NCBI RefSeq assembly: GCF_044704955.1
Contig: NC_091999.1
Location: 10,726,001-10,790,000, forward strand
Length of the DNA stretch: 64,000 nucleotides
Direction: 5' to 3'
Source of the DNA: Pristiophorus japonicus
Taxonomy: Eukaryota
In this document: in pieces, positions 8,693 to 52,416 of the stretch
Numbering within the stretch: the stretch's first letter is position 1
Layout of the letters: every line of letters starts with the position of its first letter
Made by a program: the position numbers and the translations under genes
The notes under the pieces: generated by a model
The model's database searches: none
Seen by the model: the letters and a program-made list of their open reading frames with translations, nothing else
Told to the model about the DNA's origin: nothing

Positions 8693-8732
8693 CACAGTGC
8701 TGCAGAGAGACAGCGGACCCCGGACAAAAACG
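8693..8732 (+). other. Recombination signal sequence CACAGTG-24bp-ACAAAAACG
   Basis: Heptamer 8693-8699, nonamer 8724-8732. Confidence 0.9.
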
Positions 8733-8753
8733 GATACTCAAAATATCAGTCAG

Positions 8754-8772
8754 TGCTCACCAGAGGGCGCTC
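8754..8772 (+). promoter_or_regulatory. RSS-associated CTCF-binding element
   Basis: TGCTCACCAGAGGGCGCTC vs CTCF core TGGCCACCAGGGGGCGCTA; 21 bp after the nonamer. Confidence 0.75.
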
Positions 8773-9969
8773 TTACACTGATAAACAGAAGCGAAAATTT
8801 GGACTCCACAGTGAAAATCACAGGGACCTTCTTAAAAGGGTGACAAAACACAACTCTGAACAAGAACAGGTGATATCTACTTGTAGAATTTTATTAATTG
8901 ATTTGATCTCGAGTGTTTACTAAAAATGTACTTGATACATGCATTTGGTTCGCATTAATTTACCCTTTATCTTTTGATGCTCTTTTGGTACGTGCCTCAG
9001 TTTACACATCTCCCCTGTTAGTTTCCAGGACCCAGTGTTCGCGGCCTGTAGACAATGTTTATTTGATCAGAATGTGTTGCTGGATCGGAGGCTTTTTATA
9101 CCCAATCAACAGATTTCACAAGGTCGTGACTGTGCTCTTTAAAACAACCCCAAGCACAGAATTCCCCAATGCCCAACGTTTTTCAGAAAGTCACTTCAAT
9201 TCTGGAATGTTTTCTGTCACCATTAACAATCGTGCAGCTTGCGGTTTGCAACAAACAGACAAGGGGATCTCCGCAGCTTCCGATTTGCAACACACAGACA
9301 AGGGGCTCGTTCTCACTCCCTGTCTCAACAATTTTAACCATTCCCCTCTTAAGTCACTGACTGTGGCCCAGTTCAGGGTGTTTCCATTCAGTGCTAACCA
9401 ACTCTCCACCTACCGGCCTGACAGCACCACTTGGGACACATGGAAGTGAGATGAGAGCTTCCTGAGACATGACAGCAAATTATTGACGGTGGGGATTAGA
9501 ACGGCTGTCTCCAAACATCCAAAACACATTTTAGAGAGTGGAGAGCGTCAATTTGGCTACCCTGCATCTGGCTTACGTGGAGAGTTTCTGACAAATAATT
9601 GTAGACCAAACACATTTCATATTTTTTCTCTCTTCCGCAGTGCAGAGATCTTGAGGGTCGTAGGGCTGGAGGAGGGCCCAGAGATAGAGAGGAGCGGGGA
9701 TTTGCAAAAATGAATGTAAATTTTAATGACGAGGCTTTGTCGGACTAGGAGCCAATGTAGGTCAGCGATCACAGATGTGATGGGTGATGGAACTTGGCAC
9801 GAGTTTTGATACGGGCAGCAGAGTTTTGGATGAGCTAAAGTTTACTGCGTGTGCACGCGGGGAGGCTGGCCAGTAGGGCACTGGAATAGACGAGTTCAGA
9901 GGTAGCAAACGCATGGATGGGGTTTGACTGTAAGATAAGCTGAAGTAAGGACGGAGTGAAAATGCCCAG

Positions 9970-11800
9970 GCTAGGATGAAATGTATCCCAGGCTGTTAAG
10001 AGAGGAAAATGATGAAATAGCACGGACCATCATTTTTATAACCTCTCTGGCTGCAGGTGTGGTGCTGGAGGACTGGAGGACTGCTAATGGTGTACCTTTG
10101 TTTAAAAAGGGAGAAAGGGAATGATAGAATAATTACAGGCCAGTAAGCGTAACCTCGGTGCTGGAAAAATTATTGGAAGAAACTTTGAGGGATAGGATAA
10201 ATCTGCATTGAGAAAGATCCAGATTAAACAAGGGCAGCCAGCATCGATTTGTTAAGGCAAGGTCGTGTCTGACTAACCTGATTCATTTCATTTGAGGAAC
10301 TAACAAGGAGGGTCGATCAAGGTAGAACTTTTTATAAAGTGTATATGGATTGTAGCAAGGCTTTTGAGAAGATGCCACATGGCAGAACTGTCATGTATGT
10401 AAACGCCCATGTGATCCATGCCAAAGTGGCAAGTTGTATCTAAGTTTGGCTCAGAGGCAGGAAGCAAACGATAATGATCGTTGTGTACTTTTTGCGACTG
10501 AAAGGCTATTCCCCATGGGGCTCTGCAGGGGTCAGTAATAGGTTCCCTGCCTTTTGTTATCTATATCAATGATTTAGGTTTGAATGTTGGTGTATGAATA
10601 AGAATGTTGTAGATTATACAAAACATTTTCGTGTGGTTGATAATGAAGAAAAAATATGTAAACTGCAGGAATATATCAATGAAATGGTCAGGTGGACACG
10701 ACAGTGGTAAATGGAAGTCAAACATGAGAAGCGTGAGGTAATGCATTTAGGGAGGGCTAGCAAGGCAAATGAATCCACATTAAATGGTAGGATTGTAGAA
10801 GAAGACAGAGACCTTGGAGTGCTTGTCCACAGATACCTGAAGGTAGGAGCCCATGTATAAAAGGTGTTTAAGAAGGCATACAGAATACTTGCCCTTTTTA
10901 GCCGAGGCATAGAATACAGGAGCAGGGAGGTTATGCATAAACTGCATACAACACTAGTTAGCCCACTGCAAGAGTACTACGTCCAGTTCTGGTCACCACA
11001 TTACAGGAACGTGACTGCACTAGGGAGGGTACAGAGGAGATTTGCGAGGATTATGCCTGGACTGGAGAATTTTCGCCATGAGGAAAGATTGGATAGGCTG
11101 GGTTTGATTTCATTGCAGAAAGGAAGTTGATGCGAGACCAAATTGAGGTTAATAAAATGATGGGGGTGGGGGGCTAGATAGTGTAAATAAGCGGACCTAT
11201 TTCGCTTAGTGCTGGGGTCAACAACCAGGAGGCATAGATTTAAATTAATTGGCAGACGGTTTAGAGGGGCTTTGAGGGGGAAAGTTTTCATCCAGTTAAT
11301 CGTGAGGGCTTGGAACACACTACCTGACAGGTGGTAGAGGCAGAAACCCTCACAGTACTTCAAAAGTACTTGGATGTGAATTTGAATTTCTGCAACCTAC
11401 AAGGCTACGGAACAAGAGCTGGAAAGTGGGTGAAGGCTGGATATCTCTTTGTCAGCCGGTGGACTGTGCCGAAATGCTCTCCTTGCGTGCTGTAAATTTC
11501 TATGATTCTATAATTCACTGATAAAGTCTCGGCCATTTTGATGTGCGGTGAGGAGCAATTTATTCACTCACAAGATTGTGAAAATTTGGAATTCTCTAAA
11601 ACAGCGGCATGTGGTTGCTGAATGGTTGAGTATGTTCAAGACAGAGACCTATAGATTATTGGGCAGTAATAGAATCAATAGATGTGGTATTTGCCAGGAA
11701 AGTGGATTTGGTGTGCAGGTTCATCCATGATCTTATTGAATGTCGGAGCTGGCTCAATGGATGGTGTGGTCTACCCCTGCTGCTATTAGTTATGTTCTTA
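9970..11800 (+). mobile_element. Decayed CR1 LINE RT/3' fragments
   Basis: EYYVQFWSPHY, ERLDRLGL motifs; TTCTATGATTCTAT tail ~11498-11511; paralog at ~30420-32230. Confidence 0.85.
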
Positions 11801-12980
11801 CTAAAGTAATTCCATTCTGATGGATTCTTCTAACTTTTTCCAGAACCCTTTCCAACTGTTTATCCGGCGGTCACTCCCTGAATTTCTCTCCCAGTATGTC
11901 TATATGTGTTTCTCGCCCTATCTCTCCCTCAATCTTTTCCAATGTACGTATATCTATTCCTCACTCAGTGTCTCTCAGTTAATGACAGATTTGAAAATCA
12001 AGTCGGAACAGCTCACCTCACGTACTGCAGCCTTTCAAGAAGGCAGCTCATCACCAACTTCTCAAGCATATTTAGGAATGAACAACAGATGTTGGCCCTG
12101 CCATCAACACACCTGTCCCGTGAAATAATAATAACCACGAATGGGCCGCCAGGTAGTGCTCTTTTACAGCGATAGTGTTTTTATGCAGTCAAAATATCCA
12201 AGTGTTCTTTTTGGATTCCATTCCCGGGAGATTACATTCGATTAGCTGACGGTTACTGTGTGGAGGCGAGAGTAGTCAATACTATGTAGCCATTGCAAAC
12301 AGCGCATGACACCTGTATCCCGGCCATGCTGCACCAACATATCTGAAATCTTCCCCCATTCAATTAAAGCCCTTCCCATCCAAAACTCATTTTACGAGCT
12401 CTATTTGAATGGTGGAAAATACTAGTGTTAACACACCTAATCTTCTCAGTCCCATTAGATATAATAGATCTCCATCCTTTCTGCCCCCACTGTATTCTAA
12501 ACCAAGTCCCAGAGGGTGATAGGTCAGTGTTTGGCCCACAGCCCTATCAGGCGGAGGATACTTATGTGCTCTGTTTGGGTGGAGTTACTTTAGTTATCCG
12601 CCGGAACTGCATGAGTTGACGGTAAACTTGGCAGCTTTTGTTCAAGACAATAAATGATAATCTGAGCAACCAGAGCGCGTGGTAGTTAGTATAAAGCGTC
12701 AGCACTTGCAATATTCCTTGGTCCTTAAGTGAGTACCTAACAGAATGTCATCATCATACCTGAAAATTATATCATCGATTGAACATCAGAATATCCCCGA
12801 AGTAATCGAGTTTGCAATAATATTCTTGATCCATCAGGGTAAACTAGGAACGCACATAAACTAGGAAACTGTCATGAATGGAATTGTTACTTTCACGTTT
12901 TTAATTTAGTTGAGTGTTTTGTGCATTCGGTGTTAAAACATATATATCATGATTAATTTTCCACCTCATTTTATCGGAAG

Positions 12981-13288
12981 TTATCAGCAGCGAGGCTGTC
13001 AGCAATCAACCACAGCCGGTGTTTGCACAAGAGGGAGAGTCGATTGAAATCCAGTGTAATGCAAGCACCAGCGGGAGTGAGCGCATCATCTGGTACAGAC
13101 AACTACAGAACCATGCCCTGAAATGTATCATATCTGCTATCCAGGGCAACACCACTGTCGGACGATTCAGAAACTTCATTGCCCCAACAAGAGGTTACAA
13201 CATTCTCGATATGCACAGAACCGCGGTATCAGACGCTGGAGCTGTTCGGCACTGTGAGACAAAGACTGAGCGCTGCAGTACAATACCT
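12981..13288 (+). pseudogene. TCR V segment lacking YYC (in-frame deletion), intact 23-RSS
   Basis: IEIQCNASTSGSERIIWYRQLQ...AVSDAG-AVR, then CACTGTG(13250)-23-ACAATACCT; leader relic near 12805-12838. Confidence 0.85.
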
Positions 13289-13820
13289 CCTGATGGTTTC
13301 TATTAGATAATCACTGCATCGCTGATCTCCTCTGCTGCTGGTTTTGACTGCTCTGTGAGATACATTTCCACTGTCCCAAATCCTCCTGTAATGAAAGGAT
13401 TAATCAGACTATACTCAATGTGTTGACTCCTCTGCGTGGTACAGTAACACAGGCTACATTCTGTAAGGTACGAGTGACATCGAGATTGACTCGGTTACAA
13501 ATACCCAGCGCCAGGAATGTCCCGTTAGAGAGTCACTATCACAAAGGGTTTACGTTTACCTCACTGCCCTCCATAAGGAGGAGAGGAACTTGCTGTTCCT
13601 TAGACCACTGACTTGTCTGGATATAAACCACGCATGAAAAATATACATTTCCAGCCAATCTGAGAACAGCAAATCCACGTGACTGAGACTTTAACTGGGA
13701 GGCGCTGACTTTACTTAACCGCATGTCCAATGTCTTCACTCGGTTTGGGGTCTTGTGATGCGAGCTGTGTGTCGCTTTCTTCCTGACATTGTAATTGCCA
13801 GGATGTATTATTCGGTACAA

Positions 13821-14271
13821 ATGAATCTATTCCCCGTTATTCTGCTGCTGCCAACATGTAGGTACAGGAGCTGAGCTCAATAACCCGCAGTGTTTCTTTT
13901 TATGCAAGTTGCTCCAGTGTTTTATTATCTTAATGTTTTTACAGGTCGGTGTCTCTCGGACCAAATGCTGCAGTTTCCCGCTGTGGTAAGAGTACGGATT
14001 GGTGATTCACTGCAGATTAACTGCAGCTATGATACTCCCAGCTTTTACGCCATGCAGTGGTACAAACATAAATCCAGTCAGGTAATCGAGTGGTTAATAA
14101 GGCAGTTATCGGCTGGCAGGGAGAGTAGGGATCGATTTGAAATGGATCTTTCCACTGCAGACAAACGCGGCCAATTGGTGATTACAAGCACAGTGAGCTC
14201 GGATACCGCTGTGTATTACTGTGTGATAGACTCACACTAATAGGAATTGCTGCAGTCTCTGCACAGATACC
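13821..14271 (+). CDS. TCR alpha/delta V segment, apparently functional (leader 13821-13857, V exon 13945-14232, RSS 14233-14271)
   Basis: MNLFPVILLLPT-T|gtaggt; CRCLSDQMLQFP..INCSYDTPSFYAMQWYKH..DTAVYYCVID; CACACTA-23-ACAGATACC. Confidence 0.9.
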
Positions 14272-16333
14272 TTCCTCTTGTTTACAGTTGCGTAACAGCT
14301 GCAGCAATCTCTCCAATGATGCAGGGCAGGCAAAGTGGGTCAGAGGAAGAGCAGCAGACGGAAGCTGTAGGCGGGGCTGCCACAGGCAGTGTGTCTGCAA
14401 GGGTTGTCTCGACAATTTCCATTTAACAGCGGGTTTCATCAGAGATATTGACAGTCACAACATAAAATGTCTACAGGTGGAGCCAGTCACACAATGGGTG
14501 CAGCCTTTGGTGTGAGGAAAGCATCAGCATTGCCTAATAGTTAGATTATATTCACCGGGCTGGGAACCCTCACAATGATTGTTTTTCATTTTATGCCGGT
14601 GTGTGACGATACACCGAGAGCATTAGCTTCATTCTCCAGTAACTTTCATGTTCACACTGAACTATCCGGTAGATTTTCTCTTGTCGATATTTCTAATGAA
14701 ATAGTCAACGCATTCTAAATGATTGTGAGTGTGATTAGAAAAAACAAATTTCAGCTAATATTTACACATAGAGACCAGGGCAACGCTCCCCGCTGTGTGT
14801 CCCCAGCGCAAGATTAATGGTACCTGAACACGGGTCAACCACACCAGTCTGATTGGTGACTGTGAGTGAAATAAACTGAACATCTACCTTTACATTCAAG
14901 ACGATATATTGCCAGTTTGAGTTAATATCAGGCCGCCTTCATCAGATTGCGTTGGTAATTGTTCGGAGAGGAACATGACCCCTCCCCCAAATGGCTGATA
15001 AAACGGTTCTACCTCTGCCTGAACTCAACATGAGGCGCCTTTCCCCTGTGCTGATATCAATGACATGGGATGAAATATGGTGGTTATTGACACGGGACAA
15101 TCTCCTTATCCGGGTTTCACTCCTGTCTCTATGCGTGTGTCCTTCATTCCAGCAGTAAGCGCATTTTTTCAAATGGCAGCTTTACAAAACGACCCATTCC
15201 TTCCGTGTTATTTGCTTTAATCTTTTCATTATCAGCAAATAATTCTAAAGTGTGGTATGGAGAGATTGTGACGATGAGTTTCTGACAATACAAGGCGTGG
15301 GGAGGAGTGGGGCGGAGGGGGGACGTCTTTGCTGAACTCCATGAACTTAAACACAAATATAACTAGATGCCAAATGTTGATGGATTTAAAGGAATTAAAG
15401 GATCTAAGGATCCCGAGGGCGCAGCGAGATATATACGAGCACGTCGCCTTCTCATGGATATGTCACTGTCACGCTGTTCGGATACTCGGTGAAAACAGAC
15501 AGTGAATGTATCAATTGAGCAGTTTGCAGCGCCCATTTTGGGGAGATGTGTTGCGGTGAGTGTCAAGCCTTGTACATCATCACTTATGTGGACAGATATC
15601 TAATCAGATGAATTGGAGCTTGGAAATTAAAAGCCTCAATCCCTTCCCGGTTATTTTCAAGTCCTTTCCATCCAAAACCAAATACTGCCTTTACTCATTT
15701 TATGGTCTCTATTTGAATGGGGGAAACATACCAGCGTTCAGCCAACTGATCTTGTCAGTCCACATGAGACACAATAGATATCCATCCTTTCTGTCCCCAC
15801 TACATTCCAAAACAACTCCCAGTGAGTGAAATCTCAGTGTCTGACACACTGACCCATCCAGTCCCCTGTCAGAGGGAGTGGAGACCTTGATCCTCCTCTG
15901 ACTGGGCTAAATTAGACCTCTGATCCCAGAGAATGAATGGTCAATGTATGACCCAACAGTACAGCATGAGTTAACGATAACCTTAACTGCTTTTGCTCAA
16001 GAGGATAAATGAGTAAAAGCGATACCAGAGGGTATGTCAGTACGAATAAAGCGTCAGCACTTGCATTATTCCCTAACCTTCAGTGAAGATATAAGTTATA
16101 AGTAGCATCATACTTGGTAGAAAATAAACCAACCGATTGCACATCAGAATAACCCGGAATAAATCGATGTTCCAGTAATATTCTTGATCCACCGTGCGCT
16201 GAAATCAGGAAAACACAGTGAATGAAATTTAAACTTTCAATGTTTTGATTTTGGTGAGTGAATTGTGCAGAAAAGCATTAATCGTTGAAACATATTTCTT
16301 CTTTCTAATTATCTGTCTCTTTTGTATTGGCAG

Positions 16334-18261: not shown

Positions 18262-20150
18262 AAACATAGGAACATAGAATATAGATGCAAGAGTAGGACA
18301 TTCGGCCCTTCGAGCCTGCACCATCATTCAACAACATCATGGCTGATCATTCCGTCAGTTCCCCTTTCCTGCTTTCTCTCCATACCCCTTGATCCCCTTA
18401 GCTGTAAGGGCCATATCTAACTCACTCTTGAATATATCCAATGAAGTGGCATCAACAAAATTCTGCGGCAGGGAATTCCACAGATTAACAACTCTCTGAA
18501 TGAAGATGTTTCTCCTCATCTGAGTTCTAAATGGCCTACCCCTTATCCTAAGACAGTGTCTCCCGGTTCTGGACTTTCCCAACATCGGGAACATCCTACC
18601 CACATCTAGTCTCTCGCGTCGCATCAGAATCTTGTAGGTTTCTATGAGATCCCCTCTCATCCTTCTAAAATCCAATGTATAAAGGCCCAGTTGATCCAGT
18701 CTCTCCTCATATGTCAGTCGAACCATCCCGGGAATCATTCTTATGAACGTTCGCTGCACGCACTCAATTGCAAGAACGTCCTTCCTCAGATTAGGAGACC
18801 AAAACTGAACACAATATTCCAGGTGAGGCCTCACCAAGGCCCTGTACAACTGCAGTAAGACTTCCCTGCTCGTTTACTCAAATCAGCTAGCTATGAAGGC
18901 CAAGATACCATTTGCCTTCGTCACCACCTGGTGTACCTGTATGCCAACTTTCAATGACCGATGAACCATGACACGTTGCACCTCCCCATTTCCTAATGTG
19001 CCACCATTCCGAAATTATTTTTTCTTCGCGTTTTTGCCCTCAAAGTGGATAACCTCACATTTATCCACATTATACTGCATCTGCCATGCATTTGTCCACT
19101 CACCTAACTTGTCCAATTCAGCCTGCAGCCTCCTTGCTTCCCCCTCACAGCTCACACCGCCACCAGTTGAGTGTCATCTGCAAACTTGGAGATATTACAC
19201 TCAATTCCTTCATCCAAATCATTGATGTATATTGTAAAGAACTGGAGTCCCAGCACTGAACCCTGCGGCACTCCACCATTCACTGCCTGTCATTCTGAAC
19301 AGGATCCGTTTATCCCGACGCTCTACTTCCTGTCTGCCAACCAGTTCTTTATCCACTTCAGTATATTATCCCCAATACCATGTGCTTTGTGTGGGGCCTT
19401 GTCAAAAATCTTTTGAATGTCCAAATAGACCACATCCACTGGTTCTCCCTTGTCCACTCTACTAGTCACATCCTCAGAAAATTCGAGAAGATTTGTCAAG
19501 TATGATTTCCGCTTCATGCATCCATGCTGACTTGGACCGATCCTGTCACTGCTTTCCAAATGCGCTGCTATTTCATCCTTAATAATTGATTCCAACATTT
19601 TCCCCACTACTGATGTCAGGCTAAACAATCTATAATTAACCGCTTTCTCTCTCCCTCCCTTTTTAAAAGGTGGTGTTAAATTAGCTACCCTCCAGTCCAT
19701 TGGAACTGATCCAAATTCGATAGCTTGTTGGAAAATGATCACCAATGCATCCACCATTTCTAGGGTCACTTCGTTAAGTTCTCTGGGATGCAGACGATCA
19801 GGCCCCGATAATTTATCGGCCTTCAATCCCATCAATTTCCCTAAGACAATTTCCTGCCTAATAAGGATGCCCTTCAGTTCCTCCTTCTCACTATTCCCTC
19901 AGTCCCCTAGTTCTTCCGGAAGGTTACTTGTGTCTACCATAGTGTAGACAGAGCCAAATTATTTGTTCAATTGTTCTGCCATTTCTTTGTTCCCCGCTAT
20001 AAATTCACCTGAATCCGACTGCAAGGGAACTACTTTTGTCTTCACTAATCTTTTTCTCTTCATATATCTATAGAAGCTTTTGCATTCAGTTTTTATGTTT
20101 CTGGCAAGCTTGTTCTCATACTCTAATTTCCCCCCTCTTAATTAAACCCT
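18262..20150 (-). mobile_element. CR1 LINE (RT + 3' UTR) absent from the paralogous block
   Basis: ORFs 18355..18849 and 19323..19835 are CR1 RT; not present between 35400 and 35430. Confidence 0.9.
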
Positions 20151-20546: not shown

Positions 20547-21107
20547 GATGATACTTGAGTCTGCAACTGCGCAGTCCGGAAATCCTCAGTCGGAGCAGAA
20601 ATATCGACATGGCCCTACTGCACACCTGATTCAAACAATGCCAAACAGGGAACCGAGGAAGCAATCTCTCAAATAGCACAGGCCTACAAAGGAGGGTCAG
20701 AAGGAGACAGCAAATGGATTATTTGTGTGCAGCTGCCGCAGACACAAAATTGATTGAATTCAATTATATGTGTAACCACACAAATTGCACAGTGCCGCTC
20801 AGCTGTACGTGGAGCACATGGGGCAGAAAGGGCGGTGGTTGGGTCGGGAAGTCTATGGTCTAACTGCTTCTGCTTACTGAGCAAGTGACAGGGAATAAAC
20901 CGAGTTTGGGGGAAATGAAGATATTGCGCAGCTTCAGAAATAATAAGCAGCTTTATTCAGTTCTGATCTGTAGCGTTGAAACACGATATCTGGCACATGT
21001 GTTTTATATATAATCAACAAACCCGAAATCCCCACAACGAACTTATTCTGAATAAATTATGCCAACAGAGGACGCCAATATGAAAATGGTCATTAGAGAG
21101 TCAAGTG

Positions 21108-22485: not shown

Positions 22486-22524
22486 GGTTTCTGTACGTTC
22501 TCTGCTGATCTTTGCCGCACTGTG
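22486..22524 (-). other. Orphan near-consensus 23-RSS CACAGTG-23-ACAGAAACC with no V exon attached
   Basis: Paralogous to the RSS at 38239-38277, but the upstream flank is unrelated to a V. Confidence 0.8.
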
Positions 22525-23891
22525 TAACCGTACGACATGGGCTTTATTCTATCTTCATCAAAAACCCCTTTAAATACAGTTATATTTCCCAGTGCCACAG
22601 GTTGCACTGAGTAAATTGAGCAACTTTCCGATAGGAATATCTAACCGATGATGAGGGAGTATGCCCTCCAATTGTGCTGCTGGTAAACGGGACCGAAGGA
22701 ATTAATTGACTGACAGCGTTTTAATTCCGCCCCTGCTTCAGCTCATAGTCCGATTAAACCCTCATCCATGCCTTTGATACCTCTAAGCTAGACTATTCCA
22801 TGCTCCACTGACCGGCCTCCCAGGGTGCACCCACCGTAAACGTTAGCTCATCCAAAGCTCTGCTGCCTGTATCATAACTCGTGCCAAGTTCTGTTGAGCC
22901 ATCACGTCTGTGCTCGCTGACCTACATTGGCTCCCAGTCCGACAACGCCTCGTGTTTAAAATTTACATTCATGTTTGAAAATCTCCACATTGTCTCGCTC
23001 CTCTCTATTTCTGGGCCCTCCTCCAGCGCTCCCAGCCTCAAGATCTCTGCACTGTGGAAGAGAGAAACAAGATGAAATATGTTTGGTCGACAATTATGTC
23101 AGAAAGGCTCCACATAAGCCCGATGCTGAGTAGCCAAATTGAAGTTGTATGCACTCTAAAAGAATTTTTGGATGTTTGGAGTCATACGTTCTCATCCCCA
23201 CCCTCAATAATCTTCTATCATGTCTCAGCATGCTCTCACCGCACTTCCTTGTGTCCTCAGTCGTGCTCTGAGGCCGGTAGGTGGGGAGCTGGCTACCAGT
23301 GAATAATAACACACTGAGCTGTGCCACAGTCTGTGCCCTAAGAAGGGAATGGTTAAAATTTTAGAGACAGGGAGTGGGAACGAGTCGCTTGGCTGTGTGT
23401 TGCAAACCGGAAGCTGCGGGATTGTTAATGGTGACAGGAAAGATTCCAGAATTAAGAGACTTCCTGAAGGACGTTGGAGATTGGGAGAACTCTGTGCTTG
23501 GGGCTTGTATGGAAGAGGGCAGTAACGACTTTGTGAAATCTGTTGATTGTGTATAAACAGACTCCGACCCAGCAACATACTCTGATCAAATAAAGTCTGT
23601 GTACAGGCCACAATCACAGGGTCCTGGAAACTAACAGAGGAGATGTATAAACAGATGCACAATACTGGTGGTTGGTTCTGAAAGAGCATCAAATGATAAA
23701 GTGTAAATTAAGGCGACAGAAGTGGATTTATAAGTTAATTTTAGTACAAATACGAGTTTAAATCACTTAATAAAATTCTACAAGTGGACCTCACCCCTTC
23801 TTGTTCAGAGTTGTGCTTTGGCACCCTTTTAAGAAGGTCCCTATGACTCTCACTTTGGAGGTTAAGTTTTCACTTCTGTTTATCAGTGTGA

Positions 23892-23910
23892 GGGCGCCCT
23901 CTGGTGAGCA
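23892..23910 (-). promoter_or_regulatory. RSS-associated CTCF-binding element
   Basis: Reverse complement TGCTCACCAGAGGGCGCCC, 23 bp beyond the nonamer. Confidence 0.75.
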
Positions 23911-23933
23911 CTGAGTTTGGAATTCTCAGTATG

Positions 23934-24406
23934 AGTTTTTGTACGGGGTCTGCTATATCTCTGCAGTAGTGTGGGCTGCATGGCACAGAAATACACGGCG
24001 GCATCGGAGACAAGCGTCCCAGCGATATTTAAACGAACCGTTTTATTCATTTTGTTCATATCAGCAGAGAACCTGTCTGGGAAACCTGGAGATTTGTCTC
24101 CGCCTTCTGAGCTATATCTCGTCAGTAAATATCTCGGAGCTTCCCCTGGATATTGTATGTACCAGAACAGAGTCAAACCAGCTCTCGAGTAACTGCAGCT
24201 CAGTATTATGTTCTGTCCTTCCTCAACCGTTAATTCAGACGGATCCTGGAGCACCTTATCTTCACCATTGACTTCTGTAACAAATCAGAGAATGTATCAA
24301 AACTTCTGCGCGTGAATATAACTCATGGATCTCAAGCTTGCCATTTAAACGTGGACTCACTGGGCAGCACGAACATTATTATTAGGCAGAAACATGGGGA
24401 GTACAT
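23934..24406 (-). CDS. TCR alpha/delta V segment, apparently functional (leader 24406-24361, exon 24274-23974, RSS 23973-23934); inverted duplicate of 8260
   Basis: MYSPCFCLIIMFVLP|gtgagt; KVNGEDKVLQDPSELTV..LSCSYS..LFWYIQYPG..DAAVYFCAMQP; CACACTA-24-ACAAAAACT. Confidence 0.9.
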
Positions 24407-24664
24407 GATGAATTGTATCGCGTTCGACAGGAAATAGCAGAATGTTCTCAATATTCTAATCGTTTACTCAGGATTCAACGTTGGTCGGGCGCAGACTTCA
24501 CTGATTGGGTGATTGTGGGGCGTTTCCCAGGCACAGGATTGGCTAGTCTCTATGAACCGACAATTGTGTGAACCAATCAGTTGCGGACTAATTACTTTCT
24601 TTGCCGATTTATTTTTCTGTCTCTCTCTGTGGCTATGTCTCGACCTCTCCCTTTTCGGGGGATG

Positions 24665-27020
24665 TTAAGGTAAGGTCGTGTCTGACTAACTTGATTGAAT
24701 TTTTTGAGAAGGTGACAAGGATTCTAGAGCAACCAGTATGTTCGATGTCGTCTACATGAATTTTAGCAAGGATTTTGAAAAGGTCCTACGTGGCAGGCTG
24801 AACAAAAAGTAAAAGCCCATGGGAGAGTGGCAAATTGGATCAAAAATTTGTTCAGTGGGAAGAAGCAAATTGTAATAGTTGGCGAGTGCTATTTGGATTG
24901 GATGGTTGTTTTCAGTGAGGTTCCACCGGGCTCAGTGCGCGGTGACTTGCTGGCTGTAATATATATTAATACTTTATGCTTAAATGTAGGGTGCATGATA
25001 AAGAGGTTAGCAGATGATACAACTACTGGCCTTGTGGTTGACAGTGAGTAACAAAGCCTTAGACTGTCGGAATATATCGATCAATTGGTCAGTAAAATGG
25101 AAAATGGAATGCAATCGGGAGAAGTGTGAGGTCATGCGATTGGGGAAGTACAACAAGAAAATGGATCGCATAACAAATGGAGGATACTGAGAGGTGTGGA
25201 GGTGCGGAGGGATATAAGAACGTGAGGGGGTTACCTTATGATGATAGATTGAGTAGACTGTGTCTTTACTCGTTGGAGTTCAGAAGGATGAGGGGTGAAC
25301 TTATGGAAACATTTAAAATAATGAAAGGGATAGACACGATAAAGGCAAAGAGGTTGTTGCCACTGGTAGGTGAGACGAGAACTAGGGGGCACAGCCTCAA
25401 AATATGGAGGAGCCAATTTAAAACCGAGTTGAGAAGGAATTTCCTTTTCCAGAGTGTTGTGAATCTGTGGAATTATCTGCCCACGGAAGCAGTTGTCGCT
25501 ATCTCATTGAATGTATTCAAGTCACAGATAGATAGATTTTTAACCGATAAGGGAATTAAAGGTTACGGGGAGCGGAAGGGTAAGTGGAGCTGAGTCCACG
25601 GCCAGATCAGCCATGATCTTCTTGAATGGCGGAGCAGGCTCGAGGGGCTAGATGGCCTACTCCTGTTCCTAATTCTTATAACATAAGACATAGGAACAGG
25701 AGTAGCCCATGTGACCCCTCGAGCCTGCTCTGCCATTCAATCAGATCATGGCTGACTTGATCATGGACTCAGCCCCACTTCCCCGCCTGCTCCACATAAA
25801 CCCTTAACCCCTTATCATTTAAAAAACTATTTCTGTCTTAAATGTATTCAATGTCCCAGCTTCCACAGCACTCTGAGGCAGCGAATTAAACAGATTTACA
25901 ACCCTCTGAGAGAAGAATTTCTCCTCATCTCTGTTTGAAATGGGTGGCCCCTTATTCGAAGATCATGCCCTCTAATTCTGATTTTCCCCATCTCTGCATC
26001 CACCTTGTCAAGCCCCCTCATAATCTTATACGTTTCGATAGGATCACCTCTCATTCTTCTGAATTCCAATGAGTAGAGGCCCAAACGACTCAAACTTTCC
26101 GCATAAGTCAACCCCGTCATCTCTGGAATCAACCGAGTGAACCTTATCTGAACTACCTCCAGAGAAAGTATATCCTTTCTTACATATGGAAAACAAAACT
26201 GCACGCAGTATTCCAGGTGTGGCCTCAGCAATATCTTCTATAGCTGTAGTAAGACTTCCTTGCGTTTATACTCCACCTGCTTTGCAATAAAGGCCAAGAT
26301 AACATTGGCCTTCCTGCTCATTTGCTATACCTGCATACGATCCTTTTGTGTTTGATGCAAAAGTACCCCAAGTCCCGCTGTACTGCAGCACTTTGCAATC
26401 TTTCTCCATTTAAATAATAACTTGCCTTTTGATTTTTTCTGCCAAAGAGCTATGGCAGAACTGTATACAAAACGAGTTAGTCCACAGCTTGAGTACTGCA
26501 TAAAGATCTGGTCACCACATTACAGGAAATATGTAACTGCATTCGACAGTGTACAGCGGAGGTTGCCAGGACTGGAAAAGTTTTAGCTATGGGGAAAGAT
26601 TGGATAGGCTGGTGTTGTTTTCTTTCGACCAGAGGAGGCTGAGGGAGAATGTAATTAAGGTGTATAGAATTATGAGGAGCCTAGATATAGTAGATCGGAA
26701 TGACCTACTCCCTTAGCAGAGGGTCAATAACAAGGGGGGTTAGGATCAAAGTGGTTTGTAGAAGGATTAGAGGCAAGATGAGGAAAAGTAAATTCACCTA
26801 GAGGGTGGTGGGGGTCTGGAACTCACTACCAGAAAGGATGGTTGAGGCAGAAACACTCATCACTTTTAAAAAGTACTTGCATGTTCACTGAAAGAGCCGT
26901 GACCTACAGGGTTGTGTACATAATGCCGGAAATTGGGAACAGGCAGGATATCTATTTGTCAACACGATGGATTTAATGGCCACCCTTGTATGTTGTAATC
27001 TATGATTCTATGATTCTACC
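24665..27020. mobile_element. Cluster of nested CR1 LINE fragments on both strands
   Basis: RT motifs in ORFs 24827, 25177 and 25896; tail-to-tail junction at ~25680. Confidence 0.85.
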
Positions 27021-27524
27021 GTGTCTGTGTGTGTCGCTCTCTTCCGTTCGCTCTCCCTGCTGTGTTCCAAGATGCCTGAATCTCTAGCTTCAACACAACA
27101 AGGTGCACCAATGATAGTATCAGTTATAATATATAAAACATAACTAAAGCTCAGTAACATATTTAAAATGGCAGCACTCACAGCAAGATCTAAACGTTTA
27201 TTCATTGAGCAGGGATCATGAGACGGTTCTATACCATCTGTATGTGCCGCGGTTCGTCAGAGTTGGAATCTATGTCTTTTCATGTTGTTTTGACCGAGCT
27301 TCATTCATCAGTTGTGTCTTGGATATTAAAAATAAATAAAGGGAATCAACAAAATTTAAGCTGAAGTTGCCATTAACGCCGGGTTTTTTCTCTTTCTTCA
27401 CTGAAGTGTATAATAATAATAGTAAAAAAAAAACCCATGAACAATGTGTCATAATCGTTCAACAACATCGACCTGTAGTTCGAGAATTCCGTGTTTCCTC
27501 AGGCAGATGGCTGTTTACCTCATT

Positions 27525-27543
27525 TCGCCACCAGAGGGAGCTC
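27525..27543 (+). promoter_or_regulatory. Stand-alone CTCF motif
   Basis: TCGCCACCAGAGGGAGCTC. Confidence 0.65.
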
Positions 27544-37038: not shown

Positions 37039-37054
37039 AGCATGTATTTATAGT

Positions 37055-39236: not shown

Positions 39237-39255
39237 CTGTCACCAGATGGCGGTG
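39237..39255 (+). promoter_or_regulatory. CTCF motif upstream of the 38.9 kb V promoter
   Basis: CTGTCACCAGATGGCGGTG. Confidence 0.55.
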
Positions 39256-45699: not shown

Positions 45700-48520
45700 C
45701 AAACTAATGGGACGAAATGTGGATAAGTCCCCTTTATCCCGATGGCCTGCATCCTATGGTCTTGAAGAGGTTGGCTGCAGAGATAGTGGATCCAATGCTT
45801 GTAATCTACCAAGATTCCCCGGATTCTGGCGAGGCCCCAGTAGACTGGAAAACCGCAAATCTGATGCACCTATTTAAGAAAGGAGAGAGACAGAAAGCAG
45901 GAAACTATATCCCAGTTAGCCTAATATCTGTCATTGGAAAAATGCTGCAGTCCATCATTGAGGACGTAGTAGCAGGTCTTTTAGAAAATCAGAATGCAGA
46001 AAAGCAGCGGCAGCATGGTTACATGAAAGGGAAATCATGTTTGACGAATTTGCTCCAGTTCTTTCAGGAACTAACGAGCAGGGTGGATATAGAGGAACCA
46101 GCAGATGTCGTGTATTTGGATTTCCAGAAAGCATTCAATAAGATGCCACATAAAAGATTATTGCACAAGGTAAGAGCTCACGGGGTTCGGAGTAATATAT
46201 TAGCGTTCATAGTGGATTGGACGACTAACAGAAAAGCAGACAGTCGAGATAAATGGGTCATTTTCAATTTGACAAAGAGTAACTAGTGATTTGCCAAAGC
46301 GATCAGTGCTGGGACCTCAACTATTTACAATTTGTATTAATTACTTGGATGAAAGGACCGAGTGTCATATAACCAAATTTACTAATGACACAAAAATAAG
46401 TTTGAAAACAAGTTGTGTATCGGAAGCAAATAATCAACAAAGGAACATAGATGGGGTAATTTATTAGGCAACAATTTGAAAAATTGAGTATATTGTGGAA
46501 AAATGTGAGGTTATCCACTTTGGTAGGAAAAATGAACAGCTAATTATTATTTTAAATTTGGAGAGAATAAAAAATGCAATGGTACAGAGGGATCTGTGGA
46601 TCTTTGTACAGGAAACTCAAAAACGCTAGCATGCAGGTACAAGTAATTAGTAAGGCAAATGCAATGTTGGCCTTTATTGTAATGGGGATAGAATATAAAA
46701 GCAGAGAAGTCCTGCTACTACTGTACAGATTATTGGTGAGACAACACCTAGTGCATTGCGTAAAGTTTGTTCTCCTTATTTAATGAAAGATACATTTGCA
46801 TTGGAGGCAGTTCAGAGATGTTTCACGAGATTGATTCCTGAGATGAAGGGGTTTTCTTCTGAAGAAAGTTGAGTAGGTTGGTCATGTACTTATTGGAGTT
46901 CCGAAGATAGAGGTGTTCTATTGAAACGTATACGATTCTGAGGGGACTTAACACAGTACATGCAGAGTGGATAGTTACCCCAGTGCGGGTATCTAGAATT
47001 CGGGGGCATAGGTTCAGATAAGGGGTCGCCCCTTTAAACATAGAAACATAGAAAATAGGTGCAGGAGTAGGCCATTCGGCCCTTCGAGCCTGCACCACCA
47101 TTCAATATGATCATGGCTGATTCTGAAACCTCCGTACCCCATTCCTGCTTTCCATCCATATCCTTGATCCCTTTAGCATTAAGGGCCACATGTAAGTCCC
47201 TTTGAATATATCCAACGTACTGGCCTCAACAACTTCCTGTGGTAAAGAATTCCACAGGTTCACAATTCTCTGAGTGAAACAGTTTCTCCTCATCTCGGTC
47301 CTAATTGGCTTACCACTTATCCTTAGACTGTGACCCCTGGTTCTGGACTTCCCCAACATCGGAACATTCTTCCTGCATCTAACCTGTCCAATCCCGTCAG
47401 AATTTTAAATGTTCTTCTCAATTCAAGTGAATAAAAGCCTCTTCGATGCAGTCTTTCTTCATATATCACTCCTGCCATTCCGGGCATCAGTCTGGTGATC
47501 CTTCGCTGCACTCCCTTAATAGCAAGAATATCCTTGCTCAGATTAGGAGAACAAAACTGTACACAATATTCAAGGCTTGGCATCAGCAAGGACCTGTACA
47601 ACTGCAGTAAAACCTCCCTGCTCCTATACTCAAATACTCTCGCTATGAAAGCCAATATGCCATGTGACTTCTTCACCGCCTGCTGTACCTGCATGCCAAC
47701 TTTCAATGACGGATGTACCATGACACCCAGGTCTCGTTGCACCTCTCTTTTTCATAATCTGTCAAAATTCGGAAAATATTCTGGCTTCCTGTTTTTGCCA
47801 CCAAAGTGGATAATCTCACATTTATCTCCATTATACAGCATCTGCCATGCATTTGCCGACTCAACTAACCTGTCCAATCAACTTGCAGCCTCTTAGCATC
47901 CTCCTCACAACTCACACGACCACCCAGCGGAATGTCACCTGCAAACTTGGAGATATTACATCCGCATCCTTCCTTTAAATAAATAATGTAAATTGTGAAT
48001 AGCTGAGGACCCAGCACTCAAACCTGTGCTACCCCATTAGCCATTCTGAAAAAGACCCGTTTATTCCTACCCTTTGTTTCTTGTCTGCCAACCAGTTCTC
48101 TATCCACATCAATACATTAGACCCAGTACCATGTGCTTTAATTTTGCACACTAATCTCTTGTTTGGAACCTTGTCAAAAGCCTTTTGAAATTCCAAATAC
48201 ACCACATGCCCGGATTCTCCCTTGTCCACTCTACTAGTTAAATACAAAGTAAGGAGGAATTTCTTCTCTCAAGAGGTCGCGAATCTTTTGGATTCTCTAC
48301 CTCAGAGAGTTGTGAAGTGTCGTTCATTGGATTTATTTAAGGTGGAGATATACCGATTTTTGAACGATTAGGGAGTCAATGGTTATGGGGATCGGCCGTG
48401 GAAGAGGGGTTGAGGCCAGAATCAGATCTGCCATGATATTTTTGAATGTCGGAGCAGGCTCGAGAAGCCAAATGGCCGACTCCTGCTCCTATTTCTTATT
48501 TTCTGATGTTGTTATGTTTT
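45700..48520. mobile_element. CR1 LINE fragments; inverted paralog of ~330-2570
   Basis: ORF 45717..46286 RT; same nested junction at ~47040 as at ~1237. Confidence 0.88.
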
Positions 48521-49099
48521 CCTTACTTAATAAGTCTCGTGAGGTCGCTGAGGATCCCAGGATTTATTGGCCATTCCGCAGATTCCCCTTGATAAGCTGA
48601 TGGTGGTCCTATTTCTTGGACTGCTGTATTTCTGCTCTTTACACCGTTTGATACAATTGACTGGCTTACTCGGCCACTTCACCGAACAGTCAAGAGATAA
48701 TTATGTTGTGTGTGGCACCGGAGTCCCATAAGGGACAGAGGCGGATAAAGCGGCAGTTTTCCTGCCCATTTAAGAACACTGGTGATGTAGTTGGGGTTTT
48801 ACCACAATCCGAGTTTCCGGATCATTTTTACCAACAACTGCTTCTTATTTATTTGTAAAACATTTGAATTCAAATTTCTAAACTAGCATAGTAGAAGTTG
48901 AACAAGCACACTCTAGATTATTAGCTCACACCTCGGGATTATTTGTTGAGTAAGAGAAGCAGCACACTACTACACGCCTTAAAACTTCATTTTCTTTGCA
49001 TCAACCAATCGATATGACAGTGTCAAGAGTAATATAAACAGAGAGTTGGTTTAGTGCAGCCATAACTCAGACAGGCACAAATGTAATGTAATACGAGAT

Positions 49100-49445
49100 A
49101 TTTAGAAAGAGACAGATGGAAAGAAATAGATAGAGAAACAGATTGAAATGAAGAGAATGGAAGAGAGTAAGAGATAATGAGAGAGTGAAACAATGCGAGA
49201 TTGAGACAGAGAGAGATACAGAGCGAAGAACAGAGAGAGTGAGAGCGAGAGAGATACAGAAAAAGGGACATTGTGAGAGACAGAGAGACAGGTAGACAGC
49301 GAGATAGGCAGACAGAGACACGAAGAAAATGAGATACATACAGTGAGAATCAGATGGAGACGAGAGACACAGAGATAGTGAAAAAATAGAGAGTTACATA
49401 GAGTGACAGAGAAAGGACCACAGCGAGAGAAACAGATAGATGAGC
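49100..49445. repeat. (GA)n-rich low-complexity tract
   Basis: Purine-rich GA/GACA repeats. Confidence 0.8.
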
Positions 49446-49750
49446 TGAAGCAAAGGTTTTACATCGTTAAACTAAAAAAAGGAAGAAGAGATATCAAATA
49501 ATTATGAATAAAGACTGGATACAAAGGGTGAGATGGGACAGGCATGCAAAGAAAGGGCATTGAAAGAAAATGTGCCACAGATGCCGTTGCGCTGTGTATT
49601 TCTATTTCAAATATGCTTTAAATTCACCAGCTAATTACACCAGTGACCGTCACCGCTTCTTGTTAAGAATTGTGTTTTATTTGACTTTTAAGAAAGTCCC
49701 TGTGAGTCTCACTGTGGTGGCTGAATTATTGCTTCTGTTTATCAGCGTGA

Positions 49751-49769
49751 GAGCGCCCTCTGGTGAGCA
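49751..49769 (-). promoter_or_regulatory. RSS-associated CTCF-binding element
   Basis: Reverse complement TGCTCACCAGAGGGCGCTC, 21 bp beyond the nonamer. Confidence 0.75.
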
Positions 49770-49790
49770 CTGACTGGAATTCTCAGTGTG

Positions 49791-50276
49791 GGTTTTTGAC
49801 GGGCTCTGCCATATATCTGCACCAGTGTGGGGCTCATGGCACAGAAATACACGGCGGTGTCTGAGATCAAGGCCTTGCTGATCGTTAGCTCGGTAATCTT
49901 AGTCGTTTTATGAAACACAGAAGAGAATCGGTCAGTGAAGTCGGGGTTTCGATTTACTGTCGTTCCAAAAAGGTAAAACACGTACTGAGGGTTCTGCCCG
50001 TGGTGCTGACTGTACCAGAACACAGAAGGGTTAGCATAGCTGGTTTTCAAGGTGCAGTTTATTGTCACATTCCTTTCCTCTTCAACCATCATTTCGAGAA
50101 CCGACTGTTCCACTGTGTCTTGTTGGCTCCATTCTAAAGAAAAATTATAGTAATTGTCATCATCACATTATCATATTACCAATAATAACATCAGGGGCAG
50201 AATTATTATTTATTCAAAGGAAATACTGACTGAGAAGTGATATAATGATGAAGAGCGGTGCGAGACGGTTCCACAT
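49791..50276 (-). CDS. TCR alpha/delta V segment, apparently functional (leader 50276-50231, exon 50133-49830, RSS 49829-49791)
   Basis: MWNRLAPLFIIISLL|gtcagt; KWSQQDTVEQSVLEMMVEEERNVTINCTLK..VFWYSQ..DTAVYFCAMSP; CACACTG-23-TCAAAAACC. Confidence 0.9.
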
Positions 50277-50784
50277 GATGCTCCCTGAGTCACGAACTCT
50301 GCAGCCCTGGAAAATCTCTGTCGGAGCAGCAACACAGATCCCTGCTCCACTGCACTGCTGGTCCAACCAATGTGAAGCAGGGAACAGCGACAGCGATCTC
50401 TCCAATTACACAGGTGAGGCAAGGCGTGGCAGAGCGACAGCAGCAAATGGAAGCTGTGGGCGTGGCTGTCACGTGCAGTGTTTTCAGAGGTAGGATCCAT
50501 CTGTGAGACACGAATTGCAAAATGATTACATTATTCGACTGTTACCGAAATCTTCAACAGTGAAGTCGGTTAAAACTAGGTGCTGAATTCAGCGATGGGA
50601 AAGAGAACAAAACTGTAAGGAAAAGTATAACATTAATGAGCTGAAATGTGCAATCAAAAGGAATTTTATCCTAATTTATATTGAATAATATAATTGCGGA
50701 TTGACCACTGTCCTTTGACTGAACTGGCCATTTTCGGAACCGATTTGACTGTTACCCAATCTATTCACACTTTGCTCAGAGAGG

Positions 50785-51100
50785 AGAAGTTGTACGAGAG
50801 CGGGACTTTTCCCCATACTCTGGCACTCAGCACAGCAATAGGTTCCGGTATCCACAAACTCTGCATGGCCGAAGCCCAGTGTGCTCAGACTTTGATCCCC
50901 GTTGGTACGGATCTTAAACCGGATTTGATCGCGTTCTGATTTGAATCCACAATGGATGTATCTCGGGGCCGTGCTCACTAGCCGGCTGTACCAATAGATG
51001 TTGTCGGTCTTGCTCATCCCACGCTGGATTCTGACAGGATTTCCTTCCACTGCCAAGTCTCAGGCAGGTAGAGAATTCTTAGCCAAACTCGGTGCAACTT
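50785..51100 (-). pseudogene. TCR V pseudogene (Cys23>Arg, stop in FR1, degenerate RSS)
   Basis: AVEGNPVRIQRGMSKTDNIYWYSR..DTGTYCCAE; CAGAGTA-22-ACAACTTCT. Confidence 0.75.
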
Positions 51101-51833
51101 TCGACAAAATGTAATAATTTCCTGGAATGTACAGCATAGAAACAGCTCATAGAATCAGAGAACAATTGGGAGGAAATAGAGAAGAGAAAGAGTTAAAGAA
51201 ATTTCGAAATGAACAGGGTTCGAAACATAGGTGGAGGAAAAGAAAGTGAAACTACGAAAGAAAGAATGAGAAAGACAAAGAGACAAAGCCCTGCAATAAT
51301 GAGAGTGCAGAGGACAGCAAATGAGAAAAGGGTGAAAGCGAAGTGAAAGAACGTGATAAGTAATGAGAGAAGGACAACACTAACACGTAAAACATCTTCT
51401 TTGCTTTACATTCCCTCACATTTCAGTTCCGCCTATTTAGACAGTTGAATTGTCTGAAACAATAGTCTCAACTAATAAGCCGCTGGAAACCACCCAATCG
51501 ATGAACTCACACTTTACTCTGACCGTTATCCAGACTGTGTGAAATCCTCAGATTCACCGTCAGAGGGCGCCGGGGACACATGTTTCACTCCATTATCTCC
51601 CGGAAATTCTAGAGACAAATCTTGCTGCAACACTGCCCAAGGCAGCCCCGCCCACAGCTTCCATTTTCCGCTCTCGCTCAGACCCACGTTGCCAGCCTTG
51701 TGTTATTGGAGAGATTGCTACCGCTGCTCCCTGTTTGCATTGGTGGGATCAGCTTTGCACTGGCGCGGCGATCTGTAATTCTACTCCCACAGAGGATTTC
51801 CCGGACTGCAGAGTTACAGACTGAGGGAGCATC

Positions 51834-52376
51834 ATGCGGAACCGCCTCACAGCACTCCTCATCGTTATATCACTTCTCAGTAAGTCTTTCCTTGTCATTA
51901 AAAATCCATTTTCATCTGGACTGCTGTAACTCAGCTGTTATTATTGGTAAAATGATGTTGATGATTATGTTGATTGGGATTATGGTGATGCTGATGATGA
52001 AGATGGTGATGATTACAATTATTTTATGTTAGAATGGAGCCACGAAGACACAATGGAACAGCTGGTCCCGGAAATGACAATTGAAGAGGAAAGTAATGTC
52101 ACACTAACCTGCAATTTGAAAACAGGCGATACTGCCCCTTATGTGTACTGGTACAGTCAGCACCCCGGGAAGCAGCCATAGTACGTGCTTCACCTTATCG
52201 GAGGGGATGTACACAGGAACACTGACATCACTGATGGATTCTTCTCGACATTTACTAAAATTACCAAGATTACTGTGCTCACGATTGGCAAAGCCCTGAT
52301 CTCCGACACCGCCGTGTATTTCTGTGCGATTGAACCCACACAGCTGCAGAGTTATTGTGGATCCCTAACATAAACT
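51834..52376 (+). pseudogene. TCR V with a single TAG (52179-52181); family of 50276
   Basis: Leader MRNRLTALLIVISLL|gtaagt; exon from 52033 ..LTCNLK..VYWYSQHPGKQP*YV..DTAVYFCAIEP; CACACAG-24-ACATAAACT. Confidence 0.9.
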
Positions 52377-52397
52377 CACGCTGAGAGTTCCAGTTGC

Positions 52398-52416
52398 TGC
52401 GAACCAGAGGGCGCTC
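52398..52416 (+). promoter_or_regulatory. RSS-associated CTCF-binding element
   Basis: TGCGAACCAGAGGGCGCTC, 21 bp beyond the nonamer. Confidence 0.68.

Follow-up and report, generated by a model that had tools for sequence, protein, structure and literature searches.

We describe here a CTCF-type motif coupled to the recombination signal sequences (RSSs) of T-cell receptor (TCR) alpha/delta-type V genes in a 64,000-nucleotide stretch of the genome of the shark Pristiophorus japonicus (assembly GCF_044704955.1, contig NC_091999.1, positions 10,726,001 to 10,790,000; hereafter the window, whose own coordinates are used throughout). The motif occurs behind the RSS of four V genes, one of them a pseudogene, always on the sense strand of the V gene, and it is part of a cassette which is common to two very divergent V families and which appears to be present in many further copies in the genome. 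Considering the evidence as a whole, we assign a probability of roughly 0.5 to the reading that each of these sites is a selected CTCF site, which would act as an RSS-linked barrier to, or anchor of, loop extrusion.

What is known about the even access of RAG to the hundreds of V segments comes largely from the mouse Igh locus, where RSS-adjacent CTCF sites stall cohesin and present the RSS, and we know of no work that establishes whether RSS-linked CTCF control evolved as a refinement in mammals or was part of antigen-receptor loci from the beginning. If our reading is correct, the finding of a CTCF cassette that is RSS-linked and family-wide at a cartilaginous-fish TCR locus would shift this question to the base of the jawed vertebrates.

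CTCF-type motifs behind the RSSs of shark V genes

The window contains 11 V-like exons, five of which are intact (V1, V2, V4, V7, and V9). The features relevant to the analysis are the following.

8392..8692, plus strand: V1, intact TCR alpha/delta-type V exon of family A, identified from its open reading frame (ORF) and the YFC motif of framework region 3 (FR3); leader exon at ~8260-8305, splice sites from alignment
8693..8732, plus strand: 23-type RSS of V1, with heptamer CACAGTG, 24-bp spacer, and nonamer ACAAAAACG, from the RSS scan
8754..8772, plus strand: CTCF-type 19-mer of V1, with the 13-mer core at 8758-8770; 21 bp after the nonamer, 18.2 bits
8778..8838, plus strand: remainder of the V1 cassette, with the GATA-like block CTGATAAACAGAAGC at 8778-8792 and a further conserved block to ~8838; 66-84% identity between families
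23974..24275, minus strand: V4, intact V exon of family A, inverted paralogue of V1 (inverted repeat at 90%)
23934..23973, minus strand: RSS of V4, with heptamer CACACTA, 24-bp spacer, and nonamer ACAAAAACT
23892..23910, minus strand: CTCF-type motif of V4; 23 bp after the nonamer, 18.3 bits
49830..50140, minus strand: V7, intact V exon of family B, with 34% amino-acid identity to V1 and with PDB matches
49791..49829, minus strand: 23-RSS of V7, with heptamer CACACTG, 23-bp spacer, and nonamer TCAAAAACC, from the RSS scan
49751..49769, minus strand: CTCF-type motif of V7; 21 bp after the nonamer, 18.2 bits
52030..52336, plus strand: V8, pseudogene of family B with an in-frame stop in 'GKQP*YV', head-to-head with V7 in an inverted repeat
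52398..52416, plus strand: weakened CTCF-type motif of V8; 21 bp after the nonamer, 10.8 bits
59072..59414, plus strand: V11, pseudogene resembling family A, frameshifted and carrying a TAA within the Y-x-C motif; a 23-RSS is present, with neither cassette nor CTCF motif past the nonamer
~14222, plus strand: V2, intact V gene
~60930, plus strand: V9, intact V gene

In V1 and V7, an intact V exon is accompanied by a leader exon and splice sites, and the best single-chain matches of both in PDB are V domains of TCR alpha and delta. In the protein library, the named relatives are V regions of TCR alpha, the closest one to V7 being a model from Heterodontus francisci with 74% identity, and the presence of a 23-bp-spacer RSS on the V segment is consistent with a TRA/TRD locus. 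In an index nearly devoid of shark V genes, the search for protein homologues of V1 returned two matches and that for the V7 tail returned none.

The 13-mer (C/A)ACCAGAGGGCGC (pattern MACCAGAGGGCGC) is found without mismatches at 8758-8770 (plus strand), 23894-23906 (minus), 49753-49765 (minus), and 52402-52414 (plus). A preliminary description of this DNA had reported a CTCF core at four V genes, 21 to 23 bp past the RSS nonamer and co-oriented with the V gene, and had placed it at 8754, 23892, 49751, and 52398, which correspond to ends of 19-bp matrix windows; the exact 13-mer at the four sites bears this out. Two further copies with one mismatch, at 27529 and 33042 (both plus strand), are distant from V genes. 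Allowing up to one mismatch, the window therefore holds six copies versus 0.06 expected, and none of 100 dinucleotide-preserving shuffles reaches this number.

The gap between nonamer and 19-mer measures 21 bp in V1, V7, and V8 and 23 bp in V4, and in four of four cases the motif is read on the sense strand of the V gene. All four sites thus lie within the ~100 bp 3' of a V RSS that delimit RSS-associated CTCF sites in the mouse loci (PMC5859386 Table 2). Compared with the CTCF core CCASYAGRKGGCRSY, the 13-mer fits at all positions apart from the first C. When scored with a CTCF matrix that approximates JASPAR MA0139, so that all bit values are approximate (maximum, 28.3 bits), the 19-mers of V1, V4, and V7 reach 18.2, 18.3, and 18.2 bits, respectively, and that of V8 reaches 10.8 bits; with the same matrix, the whole window contains seven sites of at least 14 bits versus 0.8 expected. 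The 19-mer of V7 is identical to that of V1, and that of V4 has C instead of T at matrix position 18, where the matrix is degenerate and both bases are common, and is otherwise the same. The low score of the V8 site is due to the loss of the nearly invariant C at matrix position 5 (C to A); moreover, position 4 is a G where the intact copies read T. Thus, the term "near-consensus," previously applied to all four sites, is appropriate for V1, V4, and V7, which also makes three of the five intact V genes as originally counted, while V8 retains a weakened pseudogene copy.

The upstream CTCF motif contacted by zinc fingers 9 to 11, a 10-mer similar to CTGCAGTTCC or CAGCTGTTCC located 2 to 7 bp upstream of the core (PMC12885311), was also looked for, and its best ungapped match in V1, V4, and V7 covers 4 to 5 of 10 positions, which is the random level. 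A conserved TTCCAG in the linker resembles the 3' half of this 10-mer; the full 10-mer scores no better there than random, and the candidate was rejected.

Regarding the abundance of the motif in the genome, contigs of two DNA runs from one sample, probably that of the assembly itself, were aligned to positions 8600-8900 with at least 80% likeness. The summed contig depth over the motif is 250-340, versus ~8-10 for the contig of V1 itself, which suggests ~30 copy-equivalents of the cassette motif genome-wide; the depth has a dip of ~90-150 over the linker and a peak of ~500-575 over the FR3 end. Furthermore, the consensus sequences obtained from loose contig ends represent paralogues with the canonical nonamer ACAAAAACC and with a linker of the family-B type leading into the same core.

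A shared 3' cassette and its conservation

The motif belongs to a cassette of ~150 bp, which runs from the FR3 end through the RSS, the linker, the CTCF core, and the GATA-like block to another short block. Nucleotide alignment of family A (V1 and V4) with family B (V7 and V8) gave the following identities by region.

V exon: 43-46% nucleotide identity (34% amino-acid); V1 versus V7, 46%
Intron and upstream DNA: unalignable
FR3 end: 74-79%
RSS: 67-89%
Linker: 48-83%
CTCF 19-mer: 84-100%; V1 versus V7, 100%
25 bp after the CTCF 19-mer: 80-84%
Following 40 bp: 66-83%
~85 bp or more past the motif: likeness between the families falls away

Overall, the similarity between the two families stops ~70-130 bp past the 19-mer. 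Within the window, blastn finds the cassette solely behind V1, V4, V7, and V8; as it is not dispersed independently of V exons, a CTCF site carried by a transposon was rejected for the window. In rodents, SINE B2 elements are carrier repeats that have spread CTCF sites. The shark motif is similar to them in that a single motif has been multiplied by the copying of its carrier DNA, and it differs in that the carrier is the 3' flank of the V gene itself rather than a transposon.

V1 and V4 are located in an inverted segmental duplication of ~4 kb, arranged tail to tail (5406-9593, plus strand, and 23097-27331, minus strand; 82-90% identity), and V7 and V8 form a head-to-head inverted pair. Since the four sites are copies of one cassette, their distance from the nonamer and their co-orientation with the V gene were inherited and represent one evolutionary event, not four. 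Thus, the fixed distance and co-orientation of the preliminary description hold as measurements at the four sites and lapse as independent occurrences. Furthermore, coding family and flank family are uncoupled, as the A-type V11 is devoid of the cassette and the B-type V7 and V8 have it; in V11, which had been overlooked by the FR3 pattern scan, homology to the cassette ends at the nonamer.

V2 (14228-14556, plus strand) and the pseudogene V10 (61950-62278, minus strand) are inverted paralogues as well, whose 3' flanks, devoid of a CTCF-like site, are as similar to each other as their exons (78%). This pair is a uniform-divergence contrast to the cassette families.

Different lines of evidence point to a constraint on the motif. 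In a sliding parsimony analysis over 19 columns of the four copies, the windows that cover the motif are the best non-coding ones, with three changes versus ~8.6 expected from the average of the non-coding cassette, and they are surpassed only by windows in the coding FR3 end. The pseudogene V8 accounts for two of these changes, and the third one is at the degenerate matrix position 18. In addition, nine columns of the non-coding cassette contain a CpG, and the CpG in the core is the only one retained in all four copies, the others showing decay to TG or CA; the observed/expected ratio of CpG across the window is 0.58. The distribution of intact and decayed copies is in line with this, since strong motifs are present in all three intact cassette genes (V1, V4, and V7), while the core is weakened in the pseudogene V8 and missing in the pseudogene V11, although the genes compared are only five.

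The ~30 paralogues recovered from the contigs offer a further view on the variability of the cassette. Among the best-supported 40 of 95 variants, which come from clipped local matches, none falls in 8750-8770, and the only one within the 19-mer is the T>C change at position 18. The heptamer, with one variant, and the nonamer show the same pattern, whereas the RSS spacer, the linker, and 8793-8817 have many variants. As local clipping favours conserved pieces and hides divergence, these data support just the statement that, among the variants listed, none shared by more than ~15% of the copies lies in the core. Altogether, the evidence that the motif is constrained beyond its neutral flank can be considered no more than suggestive.

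Two other blocks of the cassette, 8778-8792 (i.e., CTGATAAACAGAAGC, with a GATA-type TGATAA inside) and 8818-8838 (ending in TTCTTAAAAG), together with their equivalents behind V4, V7, and V8, are conserved between the families and among the paralogues.

These data bear directly on the possibility that the motif is a passenger, which would have appeared a single time, 3' of an ancestral V gene, and been kept uniform by duplication and by gene conversion of the tract from FR3 through the RSS to the flank, with the RSS under selection and the motif devoid of function. The homology of all copies across the entire cassette, the location of V1 and V4 in the segmental duplication, and the presence of other blocks as uniform as the motif among the paralogues would be expected in this case, and the uncoupling of coding and flank families in V11 versus V7 and V8 fits an exchange of tracts. 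However, gene conversion should homogenise the tract evenly, yet the spacer, the linker, and 8793-8817 vary and the core does not; moreover, the sole CpG that survives in all copies sits in the core, and the changes observed affect degenerate matrix positions or pseudogenes. We consider a passenger motif unlikely, at a clearly lower level of probability than a selected, RSS-linked CTCF site.

Read-through V models of other species

A full HMMER search was carried out with the V7 ORF read through its RSS, and it retrieved relatives, either gene models or ORFs, in which the RSS is likewise read through. Translation of the window core gives HQRAL in the frame of V7 and SPEGAL in that of V1, and the core has an offset of 71 and 72 nt after the Cys codon, respectively. 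Four of the retrieved tails may be compared with these values, the scores being those of the best-case back-translation.

Heterodontus francisci XP_067869992.1: SAEGAL, 18.7 bits best case, 72 nt after the Cys codon
JGI metagenome ORF: QQRA, 23.2 bits best case, 71 nt after the Cys codon
Logan ORF: SADGAL, 19.6 bits best case, 72 nt after the Cys codon
Callorhinchus milii A0A4W3IEI1: RQGAP, 22.4 bits best case, 71 nt after the Cys codon

Among the read-through relatives, the best CTCF-compatible back-translation falls 70-73 nt after the Cys codon. In shuffled tails, a best case of at least 18 bits is reached in 4e-4 of the windows and one of at least 22 bits in 5e-5. In the Callorhinchus model A0A4W3IEI1, none of the eight linker residues is identical to those of V7, and the core is still compatible; in particular, a single nucleotide step separates each residue of RQGAP from HQRAL, and these steps fall at matrix positions that tolerate change. 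Thus, the Heterodontus, Callorhinchus, JGI, and Logan tails are compatible with the motif at the same offset, which hints at a deep conservation within cartilaginous fish. Tails from Callorhinchus and Heterodontus that would keep a compatible core at the same offset, in spite of diverged linkers, also argue against a passenger.

The skate model P0008, from Leucoraja, ends at ...VSAH, immediately before the core; its top match overlaps the codons of the nonamer and was rejected as an artefact of best-case scoring.

Outside cartilaginous fish, a best-case forward CTCF motif 64-81 nt after the Cys codon was noticed in the teleost read-through V models P0021, P0102, P0154, P0065, P0098, P0106, P0007, and P0048, which belong to Dissostichus eleginoides, D. 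mawsoni, Xiphophorus maculatus, Danionella, and Scortum barcoo. Of 62 scorable tails, those of cartilaginous fish included, 14 reach at least 19 bits in the zone of 60-85 nt, versus 0.7% of shuffled tails. As a lead only, RSS-adjacent CTCF sites may be widespread on TRA/TRD V genes of fish.

From these peptides it can be speculated that RSS-coupled CTCF elements are ancestral to the V genes of TCR alpha/delta, having the same offset in chimaeras and sharks, probably in skates, and possibly in teleosts, and that they were later replaced by promoter-side sites at mammalian Tcra/Tcrd and retained or re-used at Igh. We regard this scenario as rather improbable at present, although slightly less so than a passenger motif, and the dating to the jawed-vertebrate ancestor draws solely on back-translated read-through peptides. 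Were it correct, the CTCF/cohesin-guided presentation of V RSSs to RAG would date to, or before, the split between cartilaginous and bony fish. The putative traces in chimaera, skate, and perhaps teleosts would add to the question of how far back such control goes, and RSS-linked CTCF control may be older and more widespread than thought.

Possible role of the element in comparison with known loci

The mechanism that we favour is modelled on the RSS-associated CTCF-binding elements (CBEs) of the proximal heavy-chain variable (VH) genes of the mouse. At the mouse Igh locus, RSS-associated CBEs convergent with IGCR1 CBE1 are found at dozens of proximal VH genes, and the CBE of VH5-2 increases rearrangement ~50-fold and the contact with the recombination centre (PMC10293834). 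CTCF stalls cohesin most when its N-terminus faces the oncoming complex, and lamprey shows loops between convergent motifs, so that the CTCF extrusion barrier is older than the jawed vertebrates (bioRxiv 10.64898/2026.10.19.759930). In the shark, the cassette would belong to a subset of the TCR alpha/delta-type V genes and would have spread with them by duplication. CTCF would be bound with its N-terminus 3' of the motif, pointing in the direction opposite to the V exon, and cohesin extruding from that side would stall and keep the adjacent RSS at the base of the loop; such stalling may raise the contact of the V segment with the recombination centre, or else anchor or partition the V array. 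Deletional joining removes the element, which is located past the RSS, and this confines its action to the time before rearrangement. While the motif, its position, its orientation relative to the V gene, its copy number, and its pattern of conservation are all observed, CTCF occupancy, the stalling of cohesin, and an effect on V usage are predicted by analogy with the mouse. For the specific role in RAG scanning we would go no further than a tentative proposal, appreciably less probable than an RSS-linked barrier or anchor in general; local looping, insulation of V units, and diffusion-type synapsis as at mouse Igk are equally possible.

The shark sites share several features with the mouse proximal VH genes of the VH5-2/81X type, namely, a near-consensus CTCF core no more than 100 bp 3' of a V 23-RSS, the location of the motif on the V sense strand, pointing from the V gene toward downstream DNA, and its presence in many members of some V families and absence from other families (PMC5859386 Table 2; PMC10293834). 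However, the locus considered here is a TCR alpha/delta-type locus of a cartilaginous fish, with candidate sites known from the sequence, and the element is part of one cassette common to two very divergent V families; furthermore, V genes and motifs are on both strands, and the window contains neither an IGCR1-like partner nor a recombination centre. Thus, as regards the VH-CBE-type architecture that had been proposed for this DNA, motif, position, and V-sense orientation match the mouse proximal VH genes, and it is not shown that all CBEs of the array converge on a single recombination centre.

In more detail, the motif always follows the sense strand of its V gene, V genes occur in both orientations, and the window is devoid of J, D, and C segments and of boundary elements. 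The motifs of V1 and V4 (8754, plus strand, and 23892, minus strand) converge on each other across 15 kb, with V2, V3, and an orphan RSS (22486-22524) between them, whereas those of V7 (minus strand) and V8 (plus strand) diverge.

Comparable differences emerge with respect to the TCR loci of the mouse. Mouse Tcra/Tcrd and Igk have many CTCF sites in their V regions that are not adjacent to RSSs. The shark array is similar to mouse Tcra/Tcrd in that it is dense in CTCF motifs (approximately one strong motif per 9 kb, versus 144 bound sites in 1.8 Mb), and it differs in that the sites of V1, V4, and V7 are 3' of the RSS and not promoter-side. Indeed, within ~800 bp upstream of the leaders of V1, V4, and V7, no CTCF match of at least 9 bits was found, and only V8 and V6 have upstream sites nearby. 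For TCR beta, two CTCF sites near the RSS have been reported, and mouse Tcrb is similar to the shark locus in having such RSS-side sites at two Trbv genes (PMC5859386 Table 2); there, however, they are exceptional, most sites being at promoters, whereas in the shark they form a family-wide cassette with ~30 copies. No description of RSS-adjacent CTCF sites at antigen-receptor loci of fish or sharks was found in the full-text literature, a coverage that leaves out most papers in subscription journals; the same had been supposed for sharks at the outset. The kind of element is already known from mouse Igh, and what is new is the type of locus, the taxon, a cassette that is modular between V families, and the two-way orientation.

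Several observations weigh against a selected, RSS-linked CTCF site. The intact genes V2 and V9, and more generally the families V2/V10, V3/V5, V6, and V9, whose 3' flanks are conserved or diverged, have no CTCF-like site within 200 bp of the RSS. Since the V genes, and hence the motifs, face both ways, many of them cannot face a single recombination centre, which speaks against a simple transfer of the VH model. Matrix position 4 is T instead of C in all the strong copies (V1, V4, and V7), and the matrix itself is an approximation. Because of the single ancestry of the cassette, position and orientation carry no independent weight. The parsimony excess corresponds to a P of ~0.03 on four copies before correction for the choice of window and is therefore suggestive, and the clipping of the paralogue matches acts in favour of apparent conservation; moreover, 8778-8792 and 8818-8866 are equally devoid of variants among the best 40 of 95, so that the core is one of several conserved blocks. 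As to the other species, back-translation takes the best case of each peptide, with the third codon positions, i.e., one-third of the bases, unread, and weaker or degraded sequences are found at the homologous offset in Chiloscyllium punctatum GCC20494.1 (HEKA, 14.1 bits), in a second Callorhinchus model (15.2 bits), and in three unnamed ORFs (ENA/Logan).

Part of these observations would be accommodated by a genuine CTCF site with a generic architectural or insulating role, such as the separation of V transcription units or the compaction of the array, in which case the closeness to the RSS would be a by-product of the origin of the element. The window is indeed dense in strong CTCF-type motifs that are not linked to an RSS, all on the plus strand (27525-27543, 21.5 bits; 39237-39255, 18.5 bits; 51554-51572, 15.4 bits; and 21059-21077, 14.9 bits); the one at 51554 is ~350 bp upstream of the pseudogene V8, between the head-to-head V7 and V8, and that at 39237 is ~450 bp upstream of the pseudogene V6, on the opposite strand. 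In addition, the RSS-linked motifs point both ways, the convergent pair of V1 and V4 fits local loops better than a single scanning direction, and the V-region CTCF sites of mouse Tcra/Tcrd and Igk are often not RSS-adjacent. On the other hand, a spacing of 21-23 bp from the nonamer, with the same offset in distant relatives, exceeds what an insulator needs, though inheritance could explain it, and we judge a purely generic role to be improbable, about on a par with a passenger motif. Least probable of all, and in our opinion very unlikely, is a composite element read by other factors (GATA-family proteins on the TGATAA block, or a promoter or enhancer that drives germline or antisense transcription) with an incidental likeness to CTCF sites, for even though the conservation of CTGATAAACAGAAGC (8778-8792) and of the third block to 8838 between families and among paralogues, as well as the undetected upstream motif, would suit it, the 13-mer departs from the CTCF core at a single informative position, a 5' C, and varies only where the matrix is degenerate.

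Should the RSS-linked CTCF site be confirmed, a cassette of "RSS plus CBE" that is exchanged or retained as a module between V families would represent a new route by which the efficiency of recombination evolves apart from the coding region. The ~30 defined sites and the natural occurrence of CBE-plus and CBE-minus V genes of the same family are concrete targets for experimental work.

Related loci were also retrieved from metagenome contigs, 11 in all (L001 to L011) at 24-37% identity, and were set aside as probable mammalian host DNA with no bearing on sharks; L001 to L003 look like host contamination with mammalian TRAV. No RNA run containing the stretch was found, and the runs X5 and X6 gave no aligned contig. 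Finally, a dispersed repeat of several hundred bp, with 77-86% identity and in both orientations, is located at 41-866 and again near 18355-19164, 47412-47877, 53110-54048, and 55672-56144; this repeat, which has no relation to the V cassette, probably represents a transposable element.

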